Part shown: one piece after another, positions 28,974-33,954 of the stretch
Position numbering within the stretch: the stretch's first letter is position 1
How the letters are laid out: every line of letters starts with the position of its first letter
Source of the DNA: Prasinococcaceae sp. CCMP 1430
Lineage: Eukaryota > Plantae > Prasinodermophyta
DNA length: 64,000 bases
Assembly (NCBI GenBank): GCA_013416795.1
Contig: RQSC01000026.1
Coordinates: forward strand, 517,812 to 581,811
Direction of reading: 5' to 3'
Translations under genes and position numbers: made by a program
Notes under the pieces: generated by a model
Seen by the model: only the letters and a program-made list of their open reading frames with translations
Told to the model about the DNA's origin: nothing
Database searches by the model: none

Positions 28974-30900
28974 TCAGAAGACGAGGGGGCACAGCATGAC
29001 CGAGCCGTTGGTGAAGGCCGCGGCGAGCGTGCGCCGGCTGGTGCGCGCGCCCGCGCGCTGCGAGTGGAGTGCGACGCGTGGCGCGGCATGGCGCTCGGCC
29101 TCGCTGCCGAGGGAGGAGGCGCGCGGGCCCTCCACGGCGCCCACCAGCGACAGCGAGAGCACGGGGTCCAGGCGCGACGACAGCAGCACGACGCGCCCAC
29201 CGGCCGTTGCCACGGCAAGGCGCTCGCCCGTCGAGTCCCACGCAAGCGAGCGCACCGACGGGGGCGACGGCGCGCCATCGCCGTCCGCGGCGGGCATCGG
29301 TAGATCCACAGGCAGCAGCTGCGCGTCAAGCGACGGCGGTCCCAGCGTAAAATGCAGAGCTACCAGCGGAGCGGCCTGGGCGGCGCGTGAGGGCAGAGCG
29401 AGGTGGTGCATCGAATGAGCACATGAGGGGCGGGTGGGTGAGCAAGGGGTCAGCAGCAGGCTGGCTAGAGCACGGGTCGCACGCGCCCACGGCCGCGCCG
29501 ACCGAGCGCGCACCTTCTCCAGTGCGAGCAGCAGCACATTCCCCTCCGGATTCCAGCACGCATCGTACACGTGGCCGTGCCCGCCCGCCCACGACATTGA
29601 CTTCCAGCTGTCCGTATGCCACACCCTGAACCGCCCCCCGCTGCCATGCGAGGCGAAGAGGTAGTCGCCACCGGGCGACCACCGCAGCACGCCAACCTCG
29701 CCAGCGCGACGCCACAGCGGGGTCGGCACGCGAGCCGCCGCGTCCCACACAACCACGGACACCCCCCCGGAGCTGGCGCCGCTCCCGAGCCTCTGGCCAT
29801 CGGGGCTCCACGCGAGCGAGCTCACTCCGCAGTGCCCACCGCACCGCATGAGCGTCATGGTCTCCGTGCCTGCGTCTGCGCCACCCTTCCTGCCGCCGCC
29901 ACCAGCGCCGGCGCTGCTACCGCGGGCGGCCCCCTTCCAACCCGCCTCTAGACCCTTCCAGAGGGCCACGCCCTCAGCGCATCCCACCGCCAACGTGCCC
30001 GGGTGCGACGGGCGCCACGCGAGCGCACGAGCGTCCGTCTGGAGGGCGCTGGAGAGCACCGCCGGCGCGCGCAGGCCGAGCGCGGCGTTCGCGAGCGCCA
30101 TGAGCGCATCCTCCAGCTGCGAAGCGACGTCGGCAGCAGCAGCCCCATCGTCGGCATGCTCATCGATAGCCCGCGCCCGAATGGCGGAGTCGATCGCCTT
30201 GGAGGCCGCCTCGACCTCCATGCTGCCCTCGACGGACACACCCGACAGCAGCGCTGCCGCCTCATGCATGTGATGGAGCAGCGCGTCGGCGCCCCCGCCG
30301 TCGGCAGCAGCACGTTCGCGCGCTTGAAGGAGCTGCGCGAGCGCGTGCGCAGCAATCCGCGCGGCAGCAGGCGACGGAGGCTCCATGTTCTCCAGATCGT
30401 ACACGACCACCTCGCCCGACGCGCGCGCCACTGCCAGCGCCAGCCGCTCGGGGTGCAGCGCGATGGGCGGGGGCTGTGGCCCGCGCGTGCCCTCGGCGGC
30501 GGCGGCACCGCCGCCTATGAGGCCGCGCACGACGGAAGACGCCTTGTCCGTCCAACCAGCGATCACCTCAGCGAGAGCCTCGCGCGCCCGCTCAGCGGAG
30601 GCCTTGGACACCGTCGCCGCGCCCGAGCGGCGCAGGTAGCTGCGCGTCCCGTCGGCGGCAAGCCGCTCGGAGAAGCCGGCGGCGGCGCTGCCAGCACTCC
30701 CGCCGCGCGCCCCACCGCGGCTGGCCGCTTCGGCGCGCACTTCAGGGAGCACCGCCCCGCGCATCAGCATGTCCTCCACATCACGCTCGCACCCCGCTGC
30801 CACTAGCGTGCGGTGCACCTCGCACAATGTCGGCCGCGTGTAGCCGCCGCCGCCGCGGCGCGGTCGGCGGCGGTAGCGCTTGCGCGCGGCGTCGCGCTCG
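28974..30900 (-). CDS. AAAS: ALADIN (AAAS) WD40 nucleoporin; in-frame intron 29376-29513; start uncertain
   Basis: TLCEVHRTL, LAWRPSHPGTLAVGCAEGVALW, VSSLAWSPDGQRL, LRWSPGGDYLFA, FRVWHTDSW, PPSLDAQLLPVDLP, AWDSTGERLAV, end MLCPLVF*. Confidence 0.85.
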
Positions 30901-31227
30901 CGGCGCCCTGCGCGCGGGCGGTTCTGGCCCGATCCTCCCTGTGCGTGCGTCGACACGGCGTCACCCCTCCTCCCACCCCAATCCCTCGCTCCCACCACCC
31001 GCCGCGCGCGCCTCTCCCGCCCTCCCGCGCGCGCCTGTGTGGCCTCCGCGAGCGCGCGCGCCGCGCGAGTACGAACTGAACGTCCCAGGGGAGGGGGGGG
31101 GGCGCGTCAAACGTGAAACCGCGTTCCGAATACCAAGCCCAGGTCTAAGGGGTGCACGGACCTGGGTGGGAAACTACATTGATCCGTTAGACCAGCGAAG
31201 AGACCCGGGTTCTATTGCGAACGCCCC

Positions 31228-32042
31228 CTAGCAGATGCGCCGGAGCTCGACGACGAAGACGAGCGTGGCGTCGCCGGGGATCTCGGGAGGGGAGCCGCGC
31301 TTGCCGTACCCGAGCTTGGGCGGCACCGTCAGCCGCCGGCGCTCGCCCTCGCGCATGCCTGCGACGCCCTGGTCCCAGCCCTTGATCACCTCGCCTGCGC
31401 CAAGCGTGAACTTGAACGACTTGGCCGCATCGAACTGCGAGCCGTCGGACGCGAGCGTGCCAACGTAGCTCATGTCGACCTCGTCGCCGCGCTCGGCCAG
31501 GGCGCCGCCCTCACGCCCTTCGCGCAGCGTCTCCACGCCCACGGATTCGCCCTCCTTGGGCTTGAGCACCACGCCCGGCAGTGCGAACTGGGCGGCCGCG
31601 AGGAGCGCAGCAGCAGTCAGCACACGTCGCACATTCGCGGCGGGCGCCCCATGAGCATTCGACTCACTCTCTGTGTCCCCCGCGCCTCCAGCTTTCCCTT
31701 CGCCACGCCCTGAGCGAGCGCCTTCTTGAACGCCGTCGCCTTCACCTCCCCGTATGCCTTATCGCAGAACTTCTTGATCGCCTGCCTCGAGGCGCCCGCG
31801 GGGTCGGCGAGCGCGTCGATCGCGGCGATGACCTGGCAGCGCACGAGCGGGCGGGGAGGACGCGTCGGCACAGGCGCGTGCGATAATGTCAGCATTGCCC
31901 GTGTGCCGCTCGCAGCCCAGGCGCGTTCGCAGCACCTCGGACTTCTAGCGAGCTTGCGGCAGCGCGGCCGCGCGGAGCGGAGCGGCGTTGTACAGGTACA
32001 CACCTTGTCGAGCACCGTCTTGGGCGCCTTAGGCGGCGGCAT
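31228..32042 (-). CDS. Linker-histone H1 globular (H15 winged-helix) domain fused to an FKBP-type peptidyl-prolyl isomerase, ~187 aa; exons 32004-32042, 31668-31832, 31228-31587
   Basis: [13 protein letters not shown] | [22 protein letters not shown]...[21 protein letters not shown] | FALPG...YVGTL...FD...[36 protein letters not shown]...LVFVVEL. Both introns are GT-AG and phase 0. Confidence 0.85.
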
Positions 32043-32350
32043 GGCGGCGAGGCCCCGGCGCCAGTCGCGCGCCTGCGCGCAGGCGTGGGGCGCACGTCTC
32101 CAGCGCAACCCGCGTGCTGTGGCGCGCCCGCCGTGGGCGCACGCCGTGCGCAGGCCGCATGGCGCGGCCCGGCGTGACCGTGCGCGCGTAACGTAGCCGC
32201 CACTTCATGTCAATTCGCGTCAGACTCGCGCGGACTTGTACGATGTATGAACGACGGCTGCAGCGTGAGGACCAGCGACACCGACTGGATGACTTAGGGC
32301 GGGGCTCAGAGCGCGGCAGTTCTAGGAGCCTACCGTCGCGCGAGCGCATC

Positions 32351-33954
32351 CTAGGCGAGCAGCGCAGCCCCCGCGGCGGGGCCCGTGGCGAAGACGTACT
32401 CGTCGAGCCTCGCAGCGTCGGCGGTGCCCGCGGCGACGCGCGGCTTGTAGTAGGCGGCCTTGAGCGCTTCGATGAAGCCACCCACGTGCCCCGTCTCGAC
32501 GAGCGACACGGTGCAGCCGCCCCAGCCGGCACCGGTGAGGCGCGCGCCAAGCGCGCCTGCGTCCTTGCACGCACGCACGAGCTCATCGAGGTCGGCGCAG
32601 CTGCAGTCGTAGTCACCCGCACAGCTCGCATGCGATTCGTCCATCAACTCGCCCAGCTTGGCGGCGACGTCCGCCGGCGCGCCGCCCGCGTCGCAGGCGG
32701 CCTTGAACGCGGAGACGCGTGCCGTCTCGGAGTACACATGGCGCGCGCGCTCCTGCAACCTGAATTCGGTCGCGTTGGCGAGGACATCCTGCGCTGCTGC
32801 GGACGCGTTGGCGAACACCTCGGCGAGCGGCACCCCCACTGCCTTGGCGGCTTCCTCCGCGCTGTACGGCGTGGCCTTGAGTTTCTCCCCCACAGCATCG
32901 GTGGCGCCCGTCAGCCCGCCGTAGAAACGCTCCGCCTTCTTCAGCGTGTCGATTTCCGACGCGGCCGTCGACGGAGCCTCGCCAGCGGCAACGGCCAGCG
33001 CCGCTGCAGCGAGGCGGCACTCCACCACGCGATAGTTGTACTGCGTGGCCGCGCTCACGGCCTTCTCCGACACGAAGAGCGAGTTGGCGATGACGAACGT
33101 GTACCCCTCCGGCAGCGCGACGCTCGTGGCGCGCACCGGGTTGAATTCGACGAGCTTGGCGCTGCCACGCTCGCCCAGCACGCTGATGGCCTGGTCCATG
33201 CCGCCGCTCATTGTGCCGATGTGCTGCTCGCACTTCCGGGCGAGCTCGGCGAGCTCAGCGCGCGGAAAGTCGAGGCCGTGCGCGGCCATCACTGCGAGAG
33301 CGCTCGCAACAACAAACGCGCTGCTCGACGACACTCCGGCGCCCGCGGGCACGCGGCCGTGCACCGCGATGTCCAGCCCCGAGGGCCCGGGCACGTCGTA
33401 CCCGGCCTCTGCAGCGTGTTCGAACACCCCCTTCGACGCGCGCGCGAGACACGAGCGCGTGGAACAGATTCGGCGGTTTCGGTCAGCGGCCTGATTACCA
33501 TCGGCACGCCTGCGGCGCTCTCGGGGCCGCGCGCCAAGCGCGATCGCCCGATCGTCCGCACCTTGTACCCGCAAAGGAAGTAATTCGCCCACGAGTGCGC
33601 CGTGCGGTCAACCTCCTGTCGGGGGTCCGCCGGGAACTCGGCGTCGGCGTAGCGCTCGTCAACGTTGGCCAGGCGCAGCATGTCGCTCGTTGCGTTGGCA
33701 CGCGCGAGCACGACAGTGTCCTGAGCGATGGCCATCGGGAGCACCGAATATCCCTCGTAGTCGATGTGCTCTCCAATGAGGTTCACACGCCCGGGGGCGC
33801 GCGCCACCACGATGGGCGCAGCGTCGCTGCCGCCTCCTCCGCCACCGTGCGCCCCCTCGAACCGAGCGCGCAGCGCCGCGAGCCGCGCGGCCGCCGCCGG
33901 CGCGTCATCGTACGCGTCCGCGAGGTCCACGAGGCGCGGCACGCGGTCCGCCAT
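32351..33954 (-). CDS. GALK: Galactokinase / GalNAc kinase (GHMP family); intron ~33431-33561
   Basis: RAPGRVNLIGEHIDYEGYSVLPMAI, PAGAGVSSSSA, SGGMDQAIS, ELMDESHASC, GARLTGAGWGGC. Confidence 0.95.

Follow-up and report, generated by a model that had tools for sequence, protein, structure and literature searches.

The minus strand of the window (the whole 64-kb stretch of DNA that was analysed, with a G+C content of about 70%) carries at positions 32042-31228 a real, transcribed three-exon gene that encodes a protein with an H15-FKBP architecture. The protein has about 187 aa and consists of a basic H15/GH1 domain, a linker of about 12 residues, and an acidic FKBP domain with a complete aromatic pocket. 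The gene is an ordinary ortholog of a catalogued and automatically annotated family, and what is new is only that this family appears to be unstudied. Compared with the characterised nuclear FKBPs, it appears to be an unstudied variant with a new targeting module.

The ATG of the gene, as read from the sequence, is located at position 32042 on the minus strand, and the parts of the gene are listed in Table 1. Exon 1 opens helix 1 of the H15 domain (…KTVLDK), and the position of intron 2 is within the last beta-strand of the H15 wing. Both introns are in phase 0 because all exon lengths are divisible by 3. Exon 2 alone matches the Pfam family Linker_histone with an E-value of 7.2e-11 and 42.6 bits (cut-off 22.4) over profile positions 8-61 of 74. 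For exon 3 alone, the match is to FKBP_C, with an E-value of 3.4e-31 and 107.8 bits. The FKBP domain is the next module after H15, and the protein stops three residues beyond the FKBP match, so that it has no Lys-rich tail; the absence of an H1-type tail had already been claimed in the earlier note on this DNA.

Table 1. Features of the H15-FKBP gene, with positions in the window.
Feature	Positions	Strand	Description
Exon 1	32042-32004	minus	ATG + 12 codons, [13 protein letters not shown]; short basic N-terminus
Intron 1	32003-31833	minus	171 nt, GTGTGT...CCAG, GT..AG, phase 0
Exon 2	31832-31668	minus	55 codons; H15 winged helix as far as the hairpin turn, [10 protein letters not shown]
Intron 2	31667-31588	minus	80 nt, GTGAGT...CCAG, GT..AG, phase 0
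Exon 3	31587-31228	minus	119 codons + TAG; last wing strand FAL, linker of ~12 residues, FKBP-type PPIase domain
Stop codon TAG	31230-31228	minus	from the sequence
Minimal 5' UTR	32043-32051	minus	X1 contig begins at 32051; GCCGCC before the ATG
Start of 3' UTR	31205-31227	minus	X2 contig 31205-31573 + X4 contig 31207-31486

Fourteen public runs contain parts of the 64-kb stretch, and four of them (X1-X4) were compared over positions 30900-32400. Run X1 has an organism label identical to that of the runs covering the whole stretch, and X4 stands under the same label; the RNA status of both X1 and X4 is a guess in the run records. X2 and X3 are marine metatranscriptome libraries. A single 537-nt contig of X1 aligns at 32051-32002, 31830-31668, and 31587-31264 with 0 mismatches and leaves out two minus-strand segments of 171 and 80 nt that have GT..AG ends. 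At the first junction, the placement of the contig is ambiguous by 2 nt, which the GT..AG ends resolve to 32004/31832. The contig is intron-free compared with the intron-bearing genome, and it is therefore regarded as cDNA. The earlier note had joined the three exons in phase 0 across 31667/31588 and 32003/31833; both junctions are exact in the X1 contig, and together with the exon lengths they confirm this joining. Exon 3 is covered by contigs in all of the runs X1-X4, and the contigs of X2, X3, and X4 cover it and about 23 nt past the stop codon with 0-3 mismatches. The locus is also present, with about 99% identity and with both introns, in metagenome DNA scaffolds of Tara Oceans. In exons 1-2, these relatives (about 99% identical, with few variants) show two third-position changes and one replacement (P4S). 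The Tara loci were retrieved by identity to the exon 3 ORF, and the variation observed in exon 3 is biased for this reason.

Open reading frames at the locus separate the two domains, as was pointed out before, and both mechanical ORF calling and the gene calls of public metagenomes reproduce this split. The Tara gene calls at the locus are prokaryote-style and consist of a 141-aa Linker_histone ORF and a 134-aa FKBP_C ORF. Intron 2 has an in-frame GTG/ATG, where ORF callers start a false FKBP-only protein (ORF 31228-31632). P0001-P0003 are FKBP-only proteins that begin in intron 2 (31588-31632) with a hydrophobic, signal-peptide-like leader. The interpretation of the P0001 ORF as a secreted or ER FKBP was rejected because intron 2 is the source of this leader and is removed in the X1 contig. 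P0138 (141 aa) is 100% identical to exon 2, and its sequence fits an unspliced read-through ORF that would start at the ATG of exon 1, read through intron 1 and exon 2, and reach intron 2 (31617-32042). Another protein, P0004 (134 aa, ENA metagenome), has about 87 residues identical to the window FKBP ORF and diverges sharply after the motif [10 protein letters not shown]; this pattern suggests an assembly chimera that was joined within a conserved motif. Split ORF calls could mislead automated localisation or family counts.

The architecture had been proposed as possibly rare or unreported, and this proposal failed, since it belongs to a large family in green algae, haptophytes, and diatoms that is automatically annotated, with one JGI label naming both domains. 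A search with exon 3 (119 aa) returned 1322 relatives at E ≤ 1e-10, and about 80 of the best 120 contain both PF00538 and PF00254 in about 173-209 aa, with 55-70% identity. With the diatom member P0110 as the query, 704 clusters passed E ≤ 1e-20, and both domains are present in each of the best 120 of these 704 matches, which have 173-285 aa. Most family members have about 180-200 aa. Named members from green algae include those of Micromonas pusilla CCMP1545, Tetraselmis striata, T. astigmatica, two Pyramimonas species, and Cymbomonas tetramitiformis, and named haptophyte members include those of Pavlovales sp. CCMP2436 and Coccolithus braarudii. Diatom members were found in Striatella, Fragilaria, Epithemia, Chaetoceros, Cyclotella, Cylindrotheca, and Coscinodiscus. 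The transcriptome of the choanoflagellate Helgoeca nana also has a member, which may be a contamination. Several clusters of the ESM Atlas contain both Pfam families, and the three listed hold 94, 100, and 73 members. JGI names some members "FKBP.../linker histone H1 and H5 family". MICPUCDRAFT_37175 (Micromonas pusilla CCMP1545) and T492DRAFT_904603 (Pavlovales sp. CCMP2436) are catalogued members, and the Chaetoceros tenuissimus member is catalogued as 'FK506-binding protein 2'. The earlier note had also considered that the architecture might be both widespread and characterised. The first part is correct; as to the second, no study of the H15-FKBP architecture was found in the open-access literature, and a survey of chromatin evolution (10.1101/2021.11.30.470311) does not mention FKBP.

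The window gene agrees with the catalogued family in its domains, in their order, and in its N-terminal motif; it has a similar length and is 66-70% identical over the FKBP exon. There is no architectural difference between them, and the intron positions differ. On the family alignment, exon 3 of the window begins directly where exon 2 stops, with neither a gap nor an overlap between them. The N-terminal motif of family members is M-[A]PPKTVLDK, and KTVLDK of exon 1 agrees with this consensus. A phmmer search of 1.84 billion representatives with the 55-aa exon 2 gave 19 matches at E ≤ 1e-3, which is no gauge of distribution because the query is too short. Three close H15 relatives of exon 2, P0140 (746 aa), P0142 (505 aa), and P0146 (486 aa), have four H15 stretches each. 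In a tree, exon 3 of the window groups with the haptophytes (Pavlovales, Coccolithus) with a support of 92/93, apart from the other green algae. Diatoms, Pyramimonas/Cymbomonas, and Tetraselmis form separate clusters in the same tree, the backbone of which is without resolution and gives no reliable origin. The placement of the window gene is only a hint of non-vertical history because its row has about 117 columns.

The intron positions of two orthologs were compared with those of the window gene. In Pavlovales CCMP2436 (L002), the whole protein is encoded in one uninterrupted 549-nt ORF. In Micromonas pusilla CCMP1545, a single exon encodes the H15 domain together with the beginning of the FKBP domain, and the sole intron (219 nt; L001 3328-3546) interrupts the FKBP domain between GTL and ESDG. 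The second intron of the window gene sits exactly at the wing/linker boundary, whereas Pavlovales has no intron and that of Micromonas differs from both window introns. The intronless gene of Pavlovales indicates that the fusion is independent of splicing, and the boundary intron is probably lineage-specific because it is absent from both of the other genomes examined. Its position carries no information about the way in which the fusion came about. Exon shuffling recorded by the boundary intron was also considered, and it was rejected on the intronless Pavlovales gene and on the boundary lying inside one exon in Micromonas.

The fold of the H15 domain was studied in a structure model of the family member P0011 (69 aligned members), which stands in for the window protein. 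The model has a mean pLDDT of 90.3, with helices at residues 5-16, 24-35, and 40-52 and strands at 56-59 and 63-66. The H15 part is followed by a short linker of lower confidence and then by the FKBP sheet; the pTM is 0.63, and the inter-domain geometry is not fixed. Modelled alone, the N-terminal domain reached a pLDDT of 90.2. The best Foldseek matches of the H15 model are H1.0, H5, Hho1p, and H1.4 with TM 0.77-0.85 and about 30% identity, and KAT6 and bacterial winged helices rank below the H1/H5 globular domains. A search independent of Foldseek with the whole P0011 model found H1/H5 at Z 10.7-11.4 over 67-68 residues. Moreover, the family H15 profile matches the PDB sequences of H1.0 at an E-value of 1.2e-10 and of H5 at 1e-8. 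Together with the Pfam match of exon 2, the profile and fold matches bear out the H15 identity claimed earlier. The claim that the final hairpin of the wing is completed only by exon 3 is also supported by homology: the last strand of the model is 63-66 (RFAL), and the exon 2/exon 3 junction of the window lies between R and FAL. The 70 N-terminal residues of P0011 are wholly occupied by the H15 fold. A search for a nucleoplasmin-like (NPL) domain on the window exons and on nine family members gave no match at E-value limits from 0.01 to 1. The N-terminal domain has the winged-helix form, including two beta-strands, and the basic helix-loop-helix bundle of FKBP25 is absent.

Known nuclear FKBPs offer the closest comparison for the function of this protein. 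NPL FKBPs, such as Fpr3/Fpr4, Drosophila FKBP39, and Arabidopsis FKBP53/FKBP43, likewise have a C-terminal FKBP domain and an N-terminal chromatin-directed module (PMC5476585, PMC4414354, PMC7026663). In contrast, the H15-FKBP protein is without the NPL pentamerisation domain and without acidic tracts, and it has about 187 aa compared with about 390-480 aa in NPL FKBPs. For targeting, it would use a monomeric DNA-binding winged helix, whereas NPL FKBPs use a histone-chaperone domain. FKBP25 (FKBP3) is likewise a small, nuclear, two-domain protein with a nucleic-acid-binding N-terminal domain, a flexible linker, and an FKBP domain (PMC4824100). The N-terminal domain of FKBP25 is a helix-loop-helix bundle (PMC4824100), whereas that of H15-FKBP is an H1/H5-type winged helix. 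Taken together, the analysis suggests, with moderate confidence, that H15-FKBP acts as a chromatin-tethered prolyl isomerase or chaperone and not as a chromatin-compacting linker histone. We infer its nuclear location, its DNA or nucleosome binding, its catalysis, and its substrates. The H15 module would dock the protein on DNA or nucleosomes via its helix-3 site, and this docking would keep the FKBP pocket a few nanometres from chromatin proteins. Among these, the prolines of the H3 tail at the entry/exit region of the DNA are possible targets, and the outcome would be a tethered prolyl isomerase or chaperone.

A narrower form of this reading comes from the comparison with yeast Fpr4, which is the nearest parallel that has been studied experimentally. 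The FKBP domain of Fpr4 isomerises H3 peptides at P16, P30, and P38 (PMC5476585). It acts on H3 prolines and is positioned at the entry/exit region of the nucleosome, which is the binding place of H1 (PMC5476585). It needs linker DNA, binds the nucleosome where DNA enters and exits, and competes with H1, and this placement depends on the basic patches of the FKBP domain itself (PMC5476585). The FKBP domain is basic in Fpr4, whereas it is acidic in H15-FKBP; with an acidic FKBP domain fused to a basic H1-type domain, an Fpr4-like placement by a different route is proposed. H15-FKBP might then be a prolyl isomerase dedicated to the nucleosome entry/exit site, with its pocket beside the H3 tail (P30/P38) or the linker histone, which is a tentative idea and rather doubtful in this specific form. 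If it is true, algae reach by domain fusion what yeast Fpr4 gets from the basic patches of its FKBP domain. It would also provide a natural and genetically separable system for testing histone proline isomerisation in chromatin regulation.

The DNA-binding sites of the H15 domain give mixed indications about such tethering. The H15 part is basic, with a family median net charge of +6 and a pI of 10.0, and exons 1 and 2 of the window together have a net charge of +8. In GH5, the helix-3 K69 site (R47, K69, R73, R74) contacts nucleosomal DNA, the R42 site (R42, R94, K97) contacts linker DNA, and K69 is the largest contributor to nucleosome binding (PMC3130272). Site positions in the family were read from a HMMER alignment to H1.0 with these GH5 definitions (PMC3130272). 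All members have R47, 93% of them have K69, and K occupies the R73 position in about half of the members and the R74 position in about a quarter. The K69 site is half kept in the window protein, where R47 and K69 are present, R73 is replaced by A, and R74 by Q. The R42 site is absent in the family: R42 is replaced by P in 80%, R94 is mostly non-basic, and K97 is replaced by G in 96%; the window protein has P, A, and G at these three positions. In addition, the wing loop is about four residues shorter than in H1.0/H5. Linker histones H1/H5, Hho1p, HP1BP3, and KAT6A/B share the winged-helix fold and the conserved equivalents of R47, K52, and K69. Compared with H1/H5, H15-FKBP is without the Lys-rich C-terminal tail and without the R42/R94/K97 site, has a shorter wing loop, and carries a fused enzyme. 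The protein is not a linker histone by two defining features, because the R42 site and the Lys-rich tail are absent. The reading of the H15 domain as dyad-targeted, which the earlier note had put forward, is plausible. Canonical chromatosome-type binding is not assured because the R42 site is absent, and the binding target may be generic DNA or something else.

These features bring up the strongest of the alternatives, in which the same gene is not directed to nucleosomes, the H15 domain serves as a general nucleic-acid or protein handle, and the FKBP domain works in RNP or ribosome biogenesis or more generally in the folding of nuclear proteins, as has been proposed for FKBP25. The missing GH5 linker-DNA site and the shortened wing agree with it, and H15-type winged helices also occur in the non-histone proteins KAT6A/B and HP1BP3. 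In FKBP25, the FKBP domain is preceded by an N-terminal domain that binds nucleic acids (PMC4824100), and this protein has been tied to nucleolin and the pre-60S subunit, as reported in the work that PMC5476585 cites as its reference 25. However, by both sequence and structure the N-terminal domain is closest to true H1.0/H5 globular domains, which rank above KAT6 and other winged helices, and the two residues of the K69 site that are retained in the family include the main contributor to nucleosome binding in GH5 (PMC3130272). We consider this alternative unlikely, and the chromatin-tethered reading is preferred, although the loss of the R42 site, the shorter wing, a shorter 40s loop of the FKBP domain, and the loosely defined arrangement of the two domains in the model count against this reading.

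The FKBP domain keeps its pocket throughout the family. The 69 members all have Y104, F115, D116, F123, V130, I131, W134, and Y157, whereas F121 and F174 are each kept in at least 90% of them (P0011 numbering). All ten pocket residues are present in exon 3 of the window. Their spacing in the family fits that of Y26, F36, D37, F46, F48, V55, I56, W59, Y82, and F99 of FKBP12, apart from a one-residue insertion and a four-residue deletion. The best PDB match of exon 3 is the FK1 domain of wheat FKBP73 (per-domain E-value 8e-26), which is identical at the pocket positions and has a 40s loop four residues longer. In the search that did not rely on Foldseek, the whole P0011 model matched FKBPs at Z 17-18 with an rmsd of 1.4-1.5. 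The active-site residues are indeed kept, as was claimed before: all lie in exon 3, are conserved across the 69 members, and agree with wheat FKBP73 FK1. Conservation of the pocket across distant lineages suggests that it is under selection, which points to a working ligand or substrate site.

A second alternative gives the FKBP fold a non-catalytic role as a binding or chaperone surface, with the protein acting as a tail-less competitor of H1 or as an architectural factor. Catalysis is not needed for what the Fpr4 FKBP domain does to chromatin arrays, as found with FK506 and the F323Y mutant (PMC5476585), and a tail-less globular domain would take H1 sites without compacting chromatin. Nevertheless, eight invariant pocket residues and two conserved in at least 90% of the 69 members indicate selection on pocket binding, and the FKBP part is acidic (pI 5.4), in contrast to that of Fpr4, whose DNA-binding surface is basic. 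A purely non-catalytic role is thus improbable, slightly more so than the general handle described above. The wrong joining of two adjacent and independent genes (an H15 protein and an FKBP), as the two separate products of prokaryote-style ORF callers might suggest, is extremely improbable, since the three exons are joined on one contig at exact GT..AG junctions, the fusion occupies one exon or one ORF in orthologs, and the H15 fold, judged from the model, is incomplete without the first residues of exon 3.

Few layers of chromatin regulation have been tested as little as the isomerisation of histone-tail prolines. The nuclear FKBPs known so far are brought to chromatin by nucleoplasmin-like or helix-loop-helix domains, and the compact H15-FKBP offers a simpler arrangement that occurs in nature. 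It is conserved in phytoplankton groups that dominate ecologically (diatoms, haptophytes, and prasinophytes), and its two halves are separately mutable.

The neighbours on both sides of the H15-FKBP gene are located on the same strand. The upstream neighbour (32351-33592, minus strand) encodes a galactokinase-type GHMP kinase. Its products in the Tara scaffolds (L004/L005 842-1780) match GalKase_gal_bdg and GHMP_kinases_C, and its 3' end is covered by contigs of X1 and X4 from about 32306. Downstream, a 674-aa ORF (28974-30998, minus strand) contains segments that look like WD40 by eye.
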